Positions 43,301 through 52,600 of a stretch of 64,000 nt of DNA are shown here, in pieces. Position numbers and translations under genes: made by a program. Source of the DNA: Trichoplax adhaerens (lineage: Eukaryota > Animalia > Placozoa); the NCBI RefSeq assembly GCF_000150275.1, contig NW_002060943.1, positions 10,076,209 to 10,140,208 of the forward strand, given 5' to 3'. Position 1 is the first letter of the stretch; every line of letters starts with the position of its first letter. Below the pieces are notes generated by a model. It did no database searches, was not told where the DNA came from, and worked only from the letters and a program-made list of their open reading frames with translations.

Positions 43301-44241
43301 TGTGGTTTAGTGGTAGGTGAAATACAGCTTAAGCATAATAATTTTTATTAATGCCTATAAATTAGATTAATATCCTCAATCTTAATCTTTATAGGTTTAA
43401 GAGGCGCCATTGCATTCGCGCTTAGCATTCATATTGAATTCGACCATGAAAAGCGAAGTATTATCATAACTTCTACTCTTATTATTGTCTTATTCACAAT
43501 TTTGGTATTAGGCGGATCAACACTGCCACTACTTAAGGTAGGTATAAATACGCTACATCAAGTAAAGGGCCTAAAAACTATTTCAGTATTATAATCTGGA
43601 TTATTTCGTTACATGCACAATTCAAGATTAATAACAGCATCAGTGATAAAAATGGTGGCCAGTTACTAAAATTGATTGTCTTTACAACTCAGTATTTAGG
43701 CGTACAAAGTAACAGTAAAGTAACGCTGAATAAAACTGAGGAAATGGTATCGTCATGAACAATCACTATTTGCGTGAATTTGAAATCCCATTGGATCTGA
43801 TACTTTAATTAACTCATTGCATTCTTAAAATTACCTTTGCCTTATGTAGGGTAATGCTATAGATACAGATGAAATAGAGCACACATTCAGATCTGGAACT
43901 TCATTGAAGGGATTCGCTCGTATTGATTCTAAGTACTATTCGCCTTAGATTAATTATAAACGCCTTACCTACTATACTTATTCTCTGATCTAAAGCTATA
44001 ATTCCAAATTATTCCATCTATATTGCTTTCAAGGTACCTTAGTCCTTTTTTCAGAAGACACGTAACTCATCAGGTAGGCCTCTTGTACGTATTTAAACTA
44101 TTCTAAACCTAATCCAATTCGTTTATTTTTTACTGGCAGGAAGTCCATGCTGCGCAAGCTGAACTTAAGCGAGTTACTAATCAATGGTATAGAGATATCA
44201 GGACATCAGATTCTGATGAAGAAAGAACCGATTTGTTATAG
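37306..44241 (+). CDS. SLC9A8: Sodium/hydrogen exchanger 8 (NHE8), multi-exon; start exon tentative
   Basis: [87 protein letters not shown]. The NHE8-type tail is [24 protein letters not shown] (stop ends 44241). Confidence 0.94.
41753..42564 (+). other. U12-type intron with AT-AA termini in SLC9A8
   Basis: The donor is ATATCCAT after ..GCT CTG, with a branch-point-like TTCTTTAAC at 42548-42556. The frame [18 protein letters not shown] requires the intron to end at the AA at 42563-42564. Confidence 0.7.
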
Positions 44242-45290
44242 TTCGTAGTTATATATTACCGTTCATACGGTACTCTCACAACTAAAATATTCTTTACAAA
44301 AAAGTTAATGCAAAGACAGCTACACCAATAACGAAACTGTGTTATAATGAAAATTGCGAAAATGGAATATTTATAGGATAGATAACTTTACCGCATATCA
44401 TCTATACGAAATTTTGAAAGTAAAAATGATGCTTTTTTCTTAAATTCTCTATCCGTTCTGGAAATTAGTTTTCTTACGGTAGATGGTATAGTACAAATCA
44501 TGTCGGAATTACATGTGAGTTTACCGATATACGCGTAAACTATCGACTCAAATCAACTACTTTATCACAATTAACAATATAAAGGAATCCTCTTGAATTA
44601 TTTATAATATTGCTTGTACTTGATTACTTTTTACCCAGAAGAACGGTACTTCTTACGATTTTGCCAATGTTAGAAGCTATATCTGTGGTGTGCAAGTTCA
44701 TATTTGATTACTGTAAGGACAATAGACAAGTTTTCATTACCGGCATTATAAAATATTAAATCATTTCCATCTGAGTGACAAAACCTAATCTATATATTTT
44801 AATTAAGTATAGTTTAATATTAGTAATAAGTAGTTTTTAAAATGAAAAGACTCATCAATGATAACATAACTATCATCTAAAATTTACTTTTATTATATCT
44901 GAATGCTTCAGAAATCAAGTGTCTGTAAAAATAATACATGAAATGCTAATTCCTTATTAAAACAGTACCAGAACTTTTGAAATTAGGCAATAAACATTTT
45001 AAAATGAATACTACTGTTAGTATAAAATCGTATCAAAAGAATCTCTTAAGCCACCTAGTGACAGTTATTTAAAAAAAGTGTACGATGGAAATATACTTAT
45101 AAATGACAAATCTACATATACTCTCATTAAAGTAATGCAAAGTATATTCAAACTATTAAACATATTTACATAAAATCCGTGTTTTTCTCTTTATTCCCGT
45201 TTGGGTAATATCAAATTCTATTGATATATAGCATAAAAACATTCAACATGTTATAAATATTTGTCTCCAATGACTCATCAAAAATAATTC

Positions 45291-48200
45291 CTATGGGCGA
45301 AACCAACGCTGATAGGGCCCACTTACTACCGGTTTTGTATCTCCTATTGACTTTACAAGAGTGTTAGTACTAGTTGGCAATGTGAAAATTCCTCTAGTAT
45401 AAATTTTAATGTTATCACAAGTTGTAGTATTATCAGTGCTAGAAATGGCCTGCTGATTTGTTGTCAGTCCAGTGAGAACTTGATTTCTATGATTCAAATC
45501 AAAAATTCTAAATTTTGAATCAGTAGTCGGATATGGGCCTACAGAACGTTTCATGCTTGACGGAAATGATGTATTGCCATAATTTAATGGATTATTACCG
45601 CTAGTATGTGCTCGTAAAGGAGTTTTACCAGTATTATTATAAAGATGTTGTTGATTTCGAAATTTAATTTCTTTTTGACGTAAAAGTTCGCGTTGACTTG
45701 CTTTCAACGTTTTGTGGTGAAAAAAAGTCATAGTTATCCGTTGGGGATGTGAGCGGTCGGGGCTTTGTATTGGAGTGGTAGCCCGAACTTCTTTACTACT
45801 ACACTCAATTAATAATGATCCATGAGGTAATGTTAACCCTATACCACTCGTGCCAATCCCTATTGCACTGTCGCTATCTAGGGTAGTATGTACCCTTTCT
45901 ATACCAGCAGGTAATGCAGATTCAAATTCATCAATTCCAGAGTTTTGTAAAAACGACGTAGAATCGCCTAATCCATTTCCTACTATCTCACTCATATCAT
46001 AAGGCGAAAGAATGCTATCATCATTTATATTTGTTGTTGATGATCTGGATAATGGCCGGTACATAGGATAAATATGGAGTTGGTTCTTGACATTTTCATC
46101 TTCAGGATCTTTCAAGAGAGTACAAACCTTGAGACGTATAAAGAAGTTTTTAAACACTGACTTTTTTAGTATTAGTAATGCCTGTACATATAATTCGACA
46201 AATATTTTTTTTAAAAACCTCCAATTTAATCGCATTAGGTAAACTATAACACACCATAAAATGCCTTTATCTTTATATTTACTGTTATGTGATGAATGTG
46301 CGTTAATACTGTTAGCAATATACAATAAAATTTAACTAGTATCTTACCATCGATGCTCCATCATCTAGGCCCTCAGTATTAACATGGTTATGTGCACAAA
46401 AGTCCAACGAGCATATAACTCCAGAAAAGGGACCATTTTTTTCTTCATTTATGCTTTTGCCTACACAGTTTTCTTGATACTTGATCTGGAACAATTAGTA
46501 ACAACAACTACAATTAAGACCAAATCTTTAAAACTGAAATTTCTCTCGTTTTACCTGATTATTATATGCCCAAGGGGCAAATTTTTTATAAACAGGAGCT
46601 AAATCAGCTGCCAAAGATTCAAGGGCTTCTGCTAATTCTTGTTCCTATAATTATGATTGCAAGAATATACCTATTTACTACTTCACTGCCGATAACTACC
46701 GTCAAATTGTATTGCACCTTCGCGCTATCAGCTAGTTGATAAGCACTAGCGTTCAAGATGATTTTTAAACCATCGTCTTCCGTTTGGTACATATTTCCCA
46801 AAGTAAAAGCAGCTCCTTCTCTCTGGTTATCAGTTCCTTGACAATGGCAGTCTTGCCTAATTTATTGAAGAATACGCGATTCTAAGAAACTCTGATTTGT
46901 TAAAGTATATCACAATCCAAGACAAAAAATTCTTAAGATAATGATTTCAAGAATTGCCTTTCATTAATGCCATATGAGACTTTATCTGATGGATATTGCG
47001 ATAATATAGTAGACAATTGAGCATACAGGACATTAGCACGATCAGGATGAATGCCATCCCACGCAACAATAGCCATCAGCACTACAGACGCTTTACAAGT
47101 ATGGCCACGACGGCGATGAACCAAGGCCAATAATTTCTCGGATTTAGATATGCGTCTAATCGCCTAACAGATAATAATGATTGTAACCGTGACTGTCAAT
47201 TCATCTGTTACTTTCACTAGAACTAAAGTCCATTGTATTCTGTGCTCTACATACCCATTCAGCTCTCGGACATCCATCTGATGTTTTTGACTCAACTCCG
47301 GTATATTCAACCTGATATTTGACGATATTATCAATAGAGTTACTACGCACATAACTTTATTACCGTAACAATTAGCTTTACTCGACATATTCATCAAATT
47401 TATTTCATAAAAATCTAACCTCTATAACCCGAAGCTTAGATTCATCTATCCGAAACCTAATTGAATAGCGTATAGCAAAATAATGATCAACAGAAATCAT
47501 CTTACCGATTGTAACTATAAACTATCCTATATGTAAAAGTGACTAATAATTTTACAATGAAACTACAGATTGAAAGACTATCCATACTATAAACACAAAC
47601 TAAGGATGACTACAGAACCAGATGTTTGCATTGTTATGCACTTAAACCAAGACAAACCTGTCTCTTAACATTTCGCGTAATTCCTCAGTACTTCCTGCAA
47701 CTCCTAACTGGGTGTAAAAAGGAGCTCCGTCTTCGTCTATAAAACAAATTAAAGTGTTTTACGAGTACATCAAAATACTATACAATTTGTACTACATTGG
47801 GATTATATAAATAACTTCGCATTTAATTTACCTTGACATTGGCAATTGTAATCTAAATGATCATGCTGCTCTTCCGCATATGACACCGATTTTGTTTTTC
47901 TTGATTTACGTTTCTTTCTTTCAGACTGAGAATATAATCTTTGCGTCTGCATACTACTACTATCGCATTCCATCATATCAGGTTCTCTTCGATCGGTGTG
48001 CTCTTTTTTAACTGATTTCGAAGATTGCATTTTCTGTAGATTGTTATATCGCATACAAAATATTTAGAACGCATTTGCAGTATACCAAAAACTAAGCAAT
48101 TACACACTCTAATTGTTTATATATATATATATGAAGTAAAATCACATAAACAGAAAATATAATAATCTGAGGGAGTTAAATTTATAATGATGTTCTGCAC

Positions 48201-51200
48201 ATCGTGCGATAAACGATAGTCATAATAAATGTAGTGTTGCAAGTTACAAAATATAATATGATACTTATAAATTATGACCTAACTTTGAGTTAGGGTTAAT
48301 ATTACCTTCATTTAGTCCCAAGCTGATTGGTTGATTGCATAGCATAACATACGTATTATATACAGTACAGTAGTGATCACTTGTATGATATATCTTAAAA
48401 TCAGCACGTAAATACAGCAAGGGCACAAAGGTAAAAATCTATGGGATAAACTAATATAAAGTAATCATGTTGACTTTGCTCACATAGGTAACTAGTAAAG
48501 GAGAACAACTAAGTGAAACGTATCATCGTTATCCAAGCAACAATAAACTATTTAAATTAAGGTAGTGTCTGTAATAGGTACTTTTAGTTTACGATGGCAG
48601 CCTTTACGAAATTATATGCCCTATAATAATAAATATCCCTGATTTCTAGCCAAAATTAACGTAAATGATTAGAGACAAAGAAAAATTGCATAAAAATCCT
48701 TGCTATCACCAACATCAATGACCCCCTTCCTTATTTTCGTACAGTATTGTCTACTTTAATATATAAAAAAACGAAAATATAACTTATTGCAATAACTATA
48801 AGTAAAGTAACTAGGTATAATATCAGAAGATATAAAAGGATACTAAATGTCACAACACTATACTAAGTTCTATAATGAAGAAGTGATCAAAAGATTCAGC
48901 AGACTATGTGCTGTAGTTTAACAATGCCGTAATACTACACAATAAATATAACGAATAGCATGTACCCCGAGAGTATTAAATTATTGAAGCGCTCCTTGTA
49001 GTTTGAAATGGTGTAGACAATAATTTGCTAAGTGATACACGTCAATGAAGTAATTGCCTAATTATAACTCTTGTCTATAAACAATGCTCCAGTACCTGCA
49101 ATCTTTTCTTCTTAATTTTACGGCTAATTTGATTCTTCTTAGCGAAAGCTTTTGACGAACAGCGTCCTGACCCTTTAACAAGATCACGGATAGTCTTCTT
49201 TTTTTTAGAAACGTTTCTGACGGTATGAGTTGTATTACCAGGCGACGGAAGAGAATCACTAGTATCGTAGTCATTTTGATTTCCATTTGACTAAAATATA
49301 TTTAAATATAATCACATAAATTATAGACATCTTTATTAAATTTATATCTCAATGCGATAAACAAATATACTATATGAGACAGCAAGATTGATAGTTAAAC
49401 AGGAACAACAATGAATATTAGGGTATATTAGTTTATTGCTTCACAGTAGCTCACATTGAGCCGATTACACTTCAACGGATTCATGTAATAGTTAATTACG
49501 GTTCGTGTTTCAAATACCGGAAACAATGTACTATAGCAGATATACTTAAGTGTACTGTAGATAATTATCTTGCTTTAATAAACATCGATTTCCTGTTACT
49601 GATATTCATTGCGGTCGATCTCAGTATTTTATATTCTTCCTTATTTTTTATTTGATATTCTCTTACTGTAAAGTTCGACAATAAGTAGAACTATACATTA
49701 CATCTATGTCTCTAGAAATTCTTCGAAAAATGAATAAGATTTATGTCTATATATTTAATCGATTAAAGTAAAAAAAATCATATACTCAATATACCCTAAT
49801 TTCGTAAATACGAATTATTCTACTACCCATTTAATTAGTATACGACTTAAAATAACAACAAGTCAGAATTCACTCAAAGAATTACTAAAATGTGAGTATT
49901 CTTTTAAAACACTTCATCCTATTGATCTTGTAATAAAATACTAATTTATTGTCTGCTCTCTGGATTTAAACATCTCCACTATTCATTTCTCATTTTACCC
50001 GTTATCTCTAGAGACTTTAAGCCAGTAAAATAGCAAGTTTAGTATTTAATTAATTAATTATTTACGTATGCAATCGGTATCGTCACCACATACTGTACAA
50101 GTCGCACTTTTAAAGCTACACTGGCAATAATTAAAACAAATCCCATAGCTGACCTATACATACTGTACTTTAAGGACAATTCATCATTTTCTAATTTCTT
50201 CACCATTATTGTATTAATCACAGGTAATTTCAATTGAATAAACCGCTAGAATAACAGGCATTTATTGCCGTCGATTAATGAGATACACTTCAAAATAATA
50301 TTATTGAAAAGGACAGCACTCAAATGCACTCATTTACCAAATTTATAGAGCGAAGATCTAGGTCCGGGACCTACGAGAATGCCCACTTGAAATTGTTATT
50401 CTAACTTTACTGATAACTGATTATTAGTTATAATCATTTGTCAGAAATCTTCATAATGTCAATCAATAATATAAAAATAGAAATTTAGAGTAATACTGTA
50501 TTTTCTCTAGCTTTTCGATATAGCCCTCATAAATTTGGTACACAATTTATACCAATTTATACAATAATTAAGAATAACAAAGGTAAATACTTTAGAAAAT
50601 GCTACTATACTGTACACTACTACAGGCAATGGTTTCCCTCTTGTATAATACATTACGCGTATACTATAAATAACTAGTAATAATTAATTAATTATAATTA
50701 TTACTGCTAGAAACTACCCGTTCAATTTTTAAGCCTGAAATAGTGAAATAGTGTCCAGTTTTAATTCTAAAACACGCGTATACGACATGCATAACCTTCC
50801 ATACACGTTACACAGTCGTATAATCTAGTATCGTTATCTTTAAGGTATGCTAGGCATTGCTTGCTATCACTGTAAGCGATCCATCGAAACGGTGATTTAA
50901 TTAATTCACCTTATCCCTCCACAATGACAGTATCCGCATGTAGTCTATATTTACTAACTGCAGAAGCAGAGCTAAACTGAAGATGTACGAACCAGAGTAC
51001 CTATCTAAAATCCGAACCTCGAATTTCCAGTCAATTACAATTGAATTGCAGGCAAGTATAGCAATAACAGTGATTGCTGACGTGGTTAACCGATTCAAAA
51101 TCTAAAATTGGCTACGTTAACTTCCTTGCGTCAGCTATTTACTAGTGTCTAGTATCTACTCATAATACTGTAGTGTGGTACTGTGTTGTTTAACTGTTTT

Positions 51201-52075
51201 AAGTGTGGAGTCCAGTATAGCATAGGATAAAGTTGCACGATTTTTCATAGAAACATTGCAATAGATTTCGTCTTTCGAAATACTTGGAAATAAGTAGAGC
51301 TACAGTATGATTGATTAACATGTAAAACTAATAGCACCATCAATGTATGGTAAAAAAAATTCATGAATCTTTCAAAATCGCAATACATAGCTATCACTTT
51401 CTACGTGAATGATAAAGTAAAGCCATACAAATAATGAATTATAAAGAAATTAATAGAAAGCGATAATCTAAAATTTTAAATACCCGTACCTAGATCGATT
51501 AATAGAATTAAGTGAGCTGTATTAATGACTAACTGATTCATTAATTTTCGAGCTCATAATTTATAAAATTTCCCTTTTTATTACAACTAATATATAGTAA
51601 TACAACCTACAAGTATACCGTAATTTATTTCTATACTTTTAAATTTACTCCGTAAGGTGCTGCCTTGTAATTTCACAGACTAGTTTTTTTTAAATGCTGT
51701 ACTTAATTATTGTATATCCCAAATTCATCAACATTTAAACATTATTTACTGTGTCAAATGTACCGTTTCTGGTAGTCCACGACCGTATACGATTTTCAAT
51801 TAATATTGTTGTTATTTACTCGGTACTCCACTAGTGTACAGTACAATCACAGTATAGTATGCTTACATCACATGTGTACAGTACTAAAACTTTGTAGTAA
51901 TAAAATCGCAAACGCTTCCAACCTTTTTCAAACGGATGCATTTTCGATAAATACAAATTTGATGCCCGGTTTTACGGTGAAGGCAATTTTTACAAGATCC
52001 ACAGTTTTCCTTCTTAAGGCATGGGCCACATGCTCCACAAGCCTTGCGTTTCTTTGATGATTTTAAATCATCCAT
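45291..52075 (-). CDS. TET: TET-family (CXXC + Cys-rich + DSBH) protein with a degenerate catalytic centre; 11 coding exons reconstructed
   Basis: CXXC exon at 51923-52075 ([27 protein letters not shown]). The core reads [76 protein letters not shown] and ATTP..P.RI, and the protein ends GPYQRW. All exons join in frame. Confidence 0.92.
46857..46957 (-). other. GC-AG intron in TET
   Basis: Donor AG|GCAATT and acceptor TTAG|G. Splicing gives [11 protein letters not shown] at the position equivalent to human TET NEE|RTCACQG. Confidence 0.7.
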
Positions 52076-52149: not shown

Positions 52150-52600
52150 CCACTGTACAGAAAATAATTGACTTAACTCAACCATCGTACAGTACAGTAC
52201 GCTACACGTACAGTACACTACTGTAGTGGACTAGGACTGGACCGGACTGGACTGTGCCGCGGGCTATCAGTAACATTACAGTACAGTACTGTACACTGTA
52301 CAGTGTATAATGCACTGTACTGTATATGTACAGTACATAGCTACAGTACTTTATTAGACTGTACAGTGTACTGTACAGTACTGTACTGTACAATCCCATT
52401 TCTTTACAGTACTGCACAGCTCAAACAATTTTGGTACTGTACTGTACTGTACAGTGTACAGTACTGTACAGGAATCCTACAGTATTTCTTTACAGTTCAA
52501 ACAATTGGGGTACTGTACAGTACTGTACTGTACTGTACAGTACTTTACTCAAATTTGTTTACATTTACCGATGAAGACTGTACTGTACCATACTGTCCTG
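52150..52600. promoter_or_regulatory. Very dense ACAGT/ACTGT repeat cluster immediately upstream of TET
   Basis: Starts about 75 bp upstream of the TET ATG and ends abruptly near 52600. Confidence 0.65.

Follow-up and report, generated by a model that had tools for sequence, protein, structure and literature searches.

A transcribed and conserved TET gene in Trichoplax adhaerens whose product appears to be a catalytically dead member of the family

What becomes of a 5-methylcytosine (5mC) dioxygenase in an animal that has no 5mC? Placozoans possess DNMT2 only, DNMT1 and DNMT3 having been lost, and 5mC is absent from their DNA (PMC8821070, citing de Mendoza 2019 and Xu 2019; also PMC8330077). 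According to a survey, tet is absent from species without 5mC other than dipterans (PMC8330077). The present study concerns a tet gene of the placozoan Trichoplax adhaerens that seems to have been overlooked in that survey. It lies on the minus strand of a 64,000-nucleotide stretch of contig NW_002060943.1 (positions 10,076,209 to 10,140,208; hereafter the window), at window positions 45291-52075. An original prediction, made from the letters of the window, had proposed that this gene was kept intact, that its product is enzymatically dead, and that it was retained as a chromatin adaptor after DNA methylation had disappeared. Taking all lines of evidence jointly, we consider it likely that the gene is the sole placozoan (T. 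adhaerens) orthologue of the animal TET 5mC dioxygenases. It is likewise likely that this orthologue is transcribed, correctly spliced and under purifying selection, and that its product is now a pseudo-enzyme. At the level of sequence there is good support for calling the protein catalytically dead yet retained by selection.

Descent from the TET/JBP family is indicated by homology, by the Cys-rich domain, by the CXXC finger, and by the C-terminal tail. The encoded protein has an N-terminal CXXC finger, a basic linker, a Cys-rich domain, and the double-stranded beta-helix (DSBH) of the oxygenase fold. Its zf-CXXC domain scored 34.1 bits in Pfam (cut-off, 26.5), is 62-73% identical to the CXXC domains of cnidarian and vertebrate TETs, and contains the TGHQ loop. 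Single exons matched Tet_JBP (PF12851) at 22.6 and 21.2 bits, each below the cut-off of 34.9; in a six-frame genome search, neighbouring exons together reached 44.7 bits. Phmmer aligned exons 11 and 10 to solved TET2 chains (4nm6/5d9y) with E values of 4e-12 and 1e-3, respectively, and a representative library yielded 507 TET-type matches. Exons 3-8 align to residues 1133-1310 of TET2 and give the Cys-rich domain that immediately precedes the DSBH; one zinc site is missing here. At the C terminus, SGPYQRW corresponds to the GPYxRW tails of other TETs.

The Fe ligands of TET2 are H1382, D1384, and H1881; R1261 contacts 2-oxoglutarate (2-OG), and an R1261G change reduces activity (PMC6244454). 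In the Trichoplax gene, the HxD columns read CAT GTT AAT, encoding H-V-N (residues H420-V421-N422), which phmmer places on H1382-R1383-D1384 (TET2 segment LDFCAHAHRD). The distal segment KEvRATT falls on RELHATT, and the column of H1881 is occupied by Arg (R547, codon CGG). This codon is two changes away from CAY, and therefore a single base error cannot explain the Arg. Contigs from four public runs gave no other letters at these codons, hence neither Asp nor His, and the contigs over 46346-46485 (X7, X9, and X14) had 0 differences from the reference. His occupied the 1881 column in 251/251 other TET homologues, H and D were present at the HxD columns in 161/161, and Arg at the 1896 column, which Trichoplax shares, was found in 251/251. 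These counts refer to the non-placozoan sequences returned by two large homologue searches. The first set of N-part homologues had been chosen by a pattern that requires H.H.D, and the HxD count was redone with an anchor independent of the motif, which gave the 161 sequences above. Short exons were scattered when exon fragments were aligned globally in MAFFT; residue columns were taken from local --addfragments alignments.

DNA and RNA contigs alike read H-V-N ... R where an active TET dioxygenase has the HxD...H facial triad. With the Asp of HxD replaced by Asn and the distal His by Arg, the DSBH pocket would be unable to hold Fe(II). A six-frame motif scan of the whole window recovered DFCAH, the distal motif, and the in-gene tail once each, which means that the window conceals no exon with canonical residues. 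Rescue by RNA editing was considered and rejected: A-to-I editing could recode AAU from Asn to Asp, never CGG to His. No editing variant was found at either triad codon in the contigs, which would miss rare ones.

Substitutions are also found at the cofactor, DNA and zinc positions. In the 2-OG contact region, R1261, R1262, and C1263 are replaced by V-S-Y (with K at 1261 in an alternative alignment) and S1898 by T or A, while R1896 and H1416 are retained. The loop GCSWSMYYNGCKF is replaced at columns that are invariant or almost so in 155 TET homologues (C1289N, W1291Y, Y1294E, C1298L, and S1303N), with K1299 retained. The group of DNA-loop and zinc-site residues that are replaced consists of S1284, C1289, W1291, Y1294, C1298, R1302, S1303, C1358, and R1359. 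Exon 10 further carries T1372I, N1387G, C1358K, and R1359S, and exon 11 carries Y1902F, Q1903H, H1912R, and G1913E and retains QLH (H1416), PQR (R1896), and H1904. T1372, N1387, and Y1902 are the base-recognition columns. Six of the eight residues that hold 5mC or DNA (N1387G, T1372I, Y1902F, W1291Y, Y1294E, and S1303N) are thus replaced, H1904 and K1299 being the two retained. The zinc ligands lost are C1263, C1289, C1298, and, in the DSBH, C1358, which shares a zinc site with C1289 and C1298. Retained are C1133, C1135, C1193, H1219, C1221, C1271, C1273, K1299, H1380, H1382, H1416, R1896, and H1904.

Across 155 TETs, 85 columns of the N part reach 95% conservation or more; Trichoplax agrees at 51 of the 83 that it covers, and the worst other TET at 72/85. 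In the C part, Trichoplax agrees at 16 of 25 such columns and all other TETs at 22 or more. Loss-of-function TET2 variants include H1881R, W1291R, and S1303N, together with variants of R1261, C1289, and R1359 (PMC6625141). Many of the residues replaced here are therefore ones whose single substitution inactivates human TET2, a correspondence supported by the alignments, and because the published loss-of-function data cover those positions, several independently inactivating changes appear to coincide in one protein. The substitutions listed in the original prediction all held up in these alignments: H-V-N, the Arg of the third ligand, the altered RRC segment, the loss of both zinc-ligand Cys from the loop, Gly for N1387, and the missing His of the KHG motif (H1912/G1913 are R/E). 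So did the predicted retention of the 2-OG Arg, the GPYxRW tail, and 8/8 CXXC cysteines.

It could be argued that the protein is still an enzyme, whose non-canonical site employs the His, the Asn, and some other ligand, or another metal or cofactor, perhaps with RNA or a different modified base as its new substrate. Some 2-OG oxygenases, for example halogenases, tolerate a change of the carboxylate ligand. Moreover, R1896, H1416, H1382, and H1904 have been conserved, no part is better conserved within placozoans than the DSBH strands, and a new His at the Q1903 column is common to all three placozoan sequences available (see below). However, on a beta-strand the side chain at 1903 should face away from the pocket, and R1261, N1387, T1372, and Y1902 were lost simultaneously with the DNA loop. 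Further, Arg cannot ligate Fe(II), the distal His is substituted in none of the 251 other TETs, and H1881R is a recognised loss-of-function allele of TET2 (PMC6625141). A surviving enzymatic activity is thus very unlikely, and we take the protein to be a natural pseudo-enzyme member of the TET family.

Exon-by-exon translation with phase book-keeping gave 11 exons (Table 1), 2133 nt including the stop, and 710 codons with 0 internal stops, in keeping with the uninterrupted frame first predicted. An in-frame TAA lies 3 codons 5' of the ATG, and the introns are 10 GT-AG and 1 GC-AG. RNA evidence was drawn from contigs of the four public runs aligned over 45250-51249. Of the spliced runs, X9 and X14 are recorded as RNA, and X7, from another study, is guessed to be RNA, so that at least two studies are represented. 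All junctions inside the aligned region, nine joints in number, are present in spliced contigs of these three runs. Beyond the loose end of exon 2, the X7 and X14 contigs run on into the last part of the CXXC exon, in reverse complement, and the CXXC exon is therefore spliced directly to exon 2 and so joined to the catalytic exons in one mRNA. The fourth run, X1, is unspliced and covers exons and introns equally, and therefore looks like DNA. The GC-AG intron is supported by RNA contigs of three runs; its joint is ambiguous by 6 nt, GCAA being repeated on both sides, and only the +4 cut gives GC..AG, the mRNA being identical whichever cut is chosen.

Three further observations concern the flanks and the first intron. 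A spliced X7 contig continues for 1694 letters past 45250, 3' of the stop codon, with no notable open reading frame (ORF) there, which suggests a 3' untranslated region of ~1.7 kb. An imperfect tandem array of the self-complementary 10-mer ACAGTACTGT, with ~27 copies and a higher-order period of 76 bp, occupies what is presumably the promoter or 5' flank, 110-470 bp upstream of the start codon. Intron 1 carries a 16-bp insertion polymorphism in X9 and X1 and is rich in single-base variants in X1.

Table 1. Features of the T. adhaerens tet gene and its flanks (window positions; joints as seen in RNA contigs)
Feature	Positions	Strand	Joint to next exon	Content
Exon 1	51923..52075	-		Start codon 52075-52073; CXXC zinc finger, 51 codons, 8/8 Cys, RKTGHQIC loop
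Exon 2	49096..49290	-	48033/49096	Lys/Arg-rich linker, 65 codons, resembling a nuclear localisation signal; loose end 49292 (X7, X14)
Exon 3	47832..48033	-	47736/47832	Basic linker and start of Cys-rich domain (NCQCQ = TET2 C1133/C1135)
Exon 4	47658..47736	-	47452/47654	Cys-rich domain, GAPFYTQLG block; aligned to TET2 1142-1166
Exon 5	47420..47456	-	47308/47417	Cys-rich domain micro-exon, 37 nt
Exon 6	47255..47311	-	47162/47254	Cys-rich domain, DGCP = C1193
Exon 7	46958..47163	-	46852/46954	Cys-rich domain; GHTC zinc ligands present; GC donor at end
V-S-Y segment (R1261-R1262-C1263)	46980-46972	-		In exon 7
GC-AG intron	46957-46857	-		Between exons 7 and 8
Exon 8	46718..46856	-	46643/46717	DCHCQG present (C1271/C1273)
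DNA-binding loop	46798-46760	-		Degenerate; in exon 8
Exon 9	46555..46644	-	46485/46555	Conserved helix; 60% identity to vertebrate TETs
Exon 10	46348..46485	-	46125/46346	DSBH N-terminal half; PFSG and DFCAH present; Tet_JBP positions 72-103; X7, X9, X14 contigs
HxD columns	46386-46378	-		H-V-N; in exon 10
Exon 11	45291..46127	-		DSBH second half, variable insert, C-terminal tail; Tet_JBP positions 119-164; stop 45293-45291
Distal His column	45785-45783	-		Arg; in exon 11
Helix-like block	45642-45710	-		23 residues, directly after DSBH
C-terminal tail	45294-45380	-		In exon 11
Suggested 3' untranslated region	~43556-45290	-		3' of stop codon
Insertion polymorphism	50138			16 bp; intron 1
10-mer array	52188-52549			Upstream of start codon

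An inactivated gene may simply be a transcribed relic, a pseudogene that decays slowly after the loss of 5mC and whose frame is open by chance. The number of near-invariant family residues that are changed, 32/83 in the N part and 9/25 in the C part, is what such a reading would lean on. Polymorphism, transcript structure, and comparison with other placozoans all stand against it. Across the runs, 11 coding variants were found, 8 synonymous and 3 nonsynonymous (G91V, Q172H, and Q658P), all three of the latter outside the conserved blocks. Among the variants listed, the ratio of nonsynonymous to synonymous polymorphism per site (pN/pS) is 0.10 (binomial P = 4e-4; 1552 nonsynonymous and 425 synonymous sites). 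Run X1 alone has 3 variants in 1977 exonic bases vs 17 in 4023 non-exonic bases (P = 0.10). The 710 codons are distributed over 11 correctly spliced exons without a stop or a frameshift, and the CXXC finger remains as close to its counterparts in distant phyla as stated above.

Two diverged orthologues of the last exon, P0151 (ENA) and P0001 (Logan), are 69% identical to the window gene and 85% identical to each other. Both have open frames that end at the same position and retain KEVRATT with the Arg, PQR, and the SGPYQRW tail; the HG motif is retained in P0001 and reads NG in P0151. Conservation among the three lineages is patchy, 22-27 of every 30 residues being identical in the DSBH strands and the tail vs 12-14 of 30 in the linkers. 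Eight changes at near-invariant columns (G1860S, A1865T, A1876S/C, H1881R, V1900T, Q1903H, H1912R, and G1913E) are common to all three placozoans; they are therefore old, and became fixed afterwards. In a 46-column DSBH core, the placozoans are 80-87% identical mutually and ~50% identical to other TETs, which are 70-83% identical among themselves. The pattern apparently reflects rapid change along the placozoan stem and constraint thereafter, without ongoing decay; the last-exon changes would have arisen before the sampled placozoan lineages separated, on their common stem, and then been frozen. An open frame, a spliced mRNA, a low pN/pS, and conserved orthologues are not the marks of a pseudogene, nor is a gene expressed in three runs and constrained in this way neutral and silent. 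Purifying selection on this tet gene is thus supported by the sequence comparisons, and the relic explanation appears highly improbable.

The block of 23 helix-like residues directly after the DSBH is invariant at 22 positions in the three placozoans, unlike in other TETs, and may be a lineage-specific interaction surface.

Several points weigh against the conclusion that this is a dead and selectively retained protein. The retention of R1896, H1416, and H1382 makes some binding of 2-OG or another ligand possible. The polymorphism test is small, with 11 contig-derived variants, 5 more lying outside the listing. Finally, the prediction that sister orthologues would share the substitutions was borne out in part: Arg is present at the 1881 column of P0151 and P0001, whereas the evidence for H-V-N comes from the reference and close strains alone (~99.5% identical, under two organism labels). 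Used as a query, the 344-aa last-exon ORF retrieved only P0151 and P0001, and a 52-aa ORF containing H-V-N had no matches in its homologue search. A profile made of a cnidarian-type TET scaffold and the exon rows returned 612 ordinary TETs, with no placozoan protein among those listed (local BLAST), and scanning JGI metagenomes with the last-exon alignment of the three lineages gave no matches.

The rest of the genome is in accord with an animal devoid of 5mC. Six-frame searches covered the 105,631,681-bp assembly of 1414 contigs. No second TET locus was found with Tet_JBP, so that the gene described here stands as the only TET in this genome. Matches to PF00145 comprised a DNMT2-like gene (G000:C1414:5505531-5508818), whose last exon has the TRDMT1-type C-terminal motif RLLGNSLNVHV, and, on a 1.1-kb contig (G000:C146:1-1101), an ORF of 159 aa that lacks introns and carries N-terminal motifs of the bacterial type of C5 DNA methyltransferase (FAGPGG ... 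GGPPCQ). The latter looks like contaminant or symbiont DNA and not like an animal DNMT1 or DNMT3. No SRA domain was found in a genome search; one MBD and three CXXC loci are present. The presence of a DNMT2-like gene only and the lack of an SRA domain agree with the published loss of DNMT1 and DNMT3 in placozoans, on which the original prediction had relied. The genome also has an OGT gene (Glyco_transf_41; G000:C1410:7076719-7078562, exon matches with E = 9e-140), whose product is a candidate for binding the conserved C-terminal tail of TET.

What, then, is selected for? The protein has very probably been kept for a non-enzymatic job. Its CXXC finger is intact and, in a genome free of 5mC, would bind any CpG and so bring the protein to unmethylated CpG-rich DNA. 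There it could serve as a platform for partner proteins, with the preserved fold, the helix that follows the DSBH, and the tail as docking surfaces; the Lys/Arg-rich linkers resemble nuclear localisation signals and would make it a nuclear protein. Alternatively, an inactive and conserved protein may have another job, either as a sensor that binds 2-OG or succinate or as a structural subunit that acts independently of CpG binding. Half of the 2-OG site (R1896 and H1416) is retained and the metal site lost, the helix after the DSBH is placozoan-specific and almost invariant, and DNA binding by the CXXC finger is predicted from sequence. On the other hand, R1261, the other 2-OG contact, is lost, the CXXC finger, TGHQ DNA-reading loop included, shows the strongest conservation with other phyla and is spliced into the TET mRNA, and the basic linkers suggest a nuclear protein. 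We therefore regard a sensor or a CpG-independent subunit as unlikely. By analogy with other TETs, a CXXC-guided chromatin adaptor that evolved after the loss of 5mC is a reasonable hypothesis. Of that proposal, the part that stands is an intact, spliced, sole TET that has lost two Fe ligands and is under purifying selection; the adaptor role, the binding of OGT or SIN3A, and the order of the losses we infer. It is about an even chance that the gene represents a natural separation of functions, in which the stem lineage of the phylum lost the catalytic centre and the 5mC/DNA surface, and selection has since held the CXXC finger, the fold, and the tail in the sampled lineages.

If this is true, non-catalytic, CpG-targeted scaffolding by TET would be ancient, predating bilaterians, and would alone be enough for the gene to be retained after 5mC was lost. 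How far TET biology extends beyond 5mC oxidation is under active study, so far with engineered catalytic-dead alleles in mice and flies. A lineage in which evolution itself has removed the active site and selection maintains the protein would be a clean natural system for the TET scaffold, its partners, and its essential surfaces, and could show whether the scaffold role is ancestral to animals. Our literature searches found no description of an inactive placozoan TET or of any dead member of the TET family. The finding also corrects comparative surveys in which Diptera are the only 5mC-free animals with tet (PMC8330077), and it warns that the presence of a Tet_JBP domain alone does not imply a capacity to make 5-hydroxymethylcytosine.

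With animal TETs such as human TET2 (PDB 4NM6/5D9Y) and the cnidarian proteins P0087, P0153, and P0155, the Trichoplax protein shares an architecture of CXXC finger, Cys-rich domain, insert-split DSBH, and GPYxRW tail. It keeps the N-terminal zinc ligands, H1380, H1382, H1416, R1896, and H1904. It differs from them in the loss of two of the three Fe ligands (D1384N and H1881R) and in being without R1261, N1387, T1372, Y1902, the W1291/Y1294 loop, and the C1289/C1298/C1358 zinc site. A second likeness is to the loss-of-function alleles of TET2 in human neoplasia (H1881R/Q/N, R1261C/H/L/G, C1289Y/F, R1359C/H/P, W1291R, and S1303N), which affect positions that are also altered in Trichoplax, with Arg itself at H1881 (PMC6625141). 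The human alleles are somatic, single, and pathogenic, whereas in Trichoplax at least nine such positions are altered together. Moreover, the last-exon changes are fixed in the three sampled lineages, those in other exons being known from the reference and close strains only.

In Drosophila TET the HxD...H triad is intact, and the dispensability of catalysis was shown with engineered mutants; unlike the fly protein, the placozoan TET appears to have lost its triad naturally. The two animals are otherwise alike in having a 5mC-free genome without DNMT1 and DNMT3 and a single CXXC-TET gene, and the main functions of the fly protein need no catalysis, as seen in its catalysis-independent activity with PRC1 (PMC11068012) and in the germline niche (PMC11021519). 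A docking platform of the kind proposed above would fit the catalysis-independent roles of both Drosophila and mammalian TETs. A parallel outside the family is JARID2, the inactive JmjC protein of PRC2, in which a pseudo-enzyme with the 2-OG-oxygenase fold acts as a chromatin scaffold. As in JARID2, a DSBH/cupin fold without its metal ligands would here be joined to a DNA-binding module, the two proteins belonging to different families, JmjC and TET/JBP.

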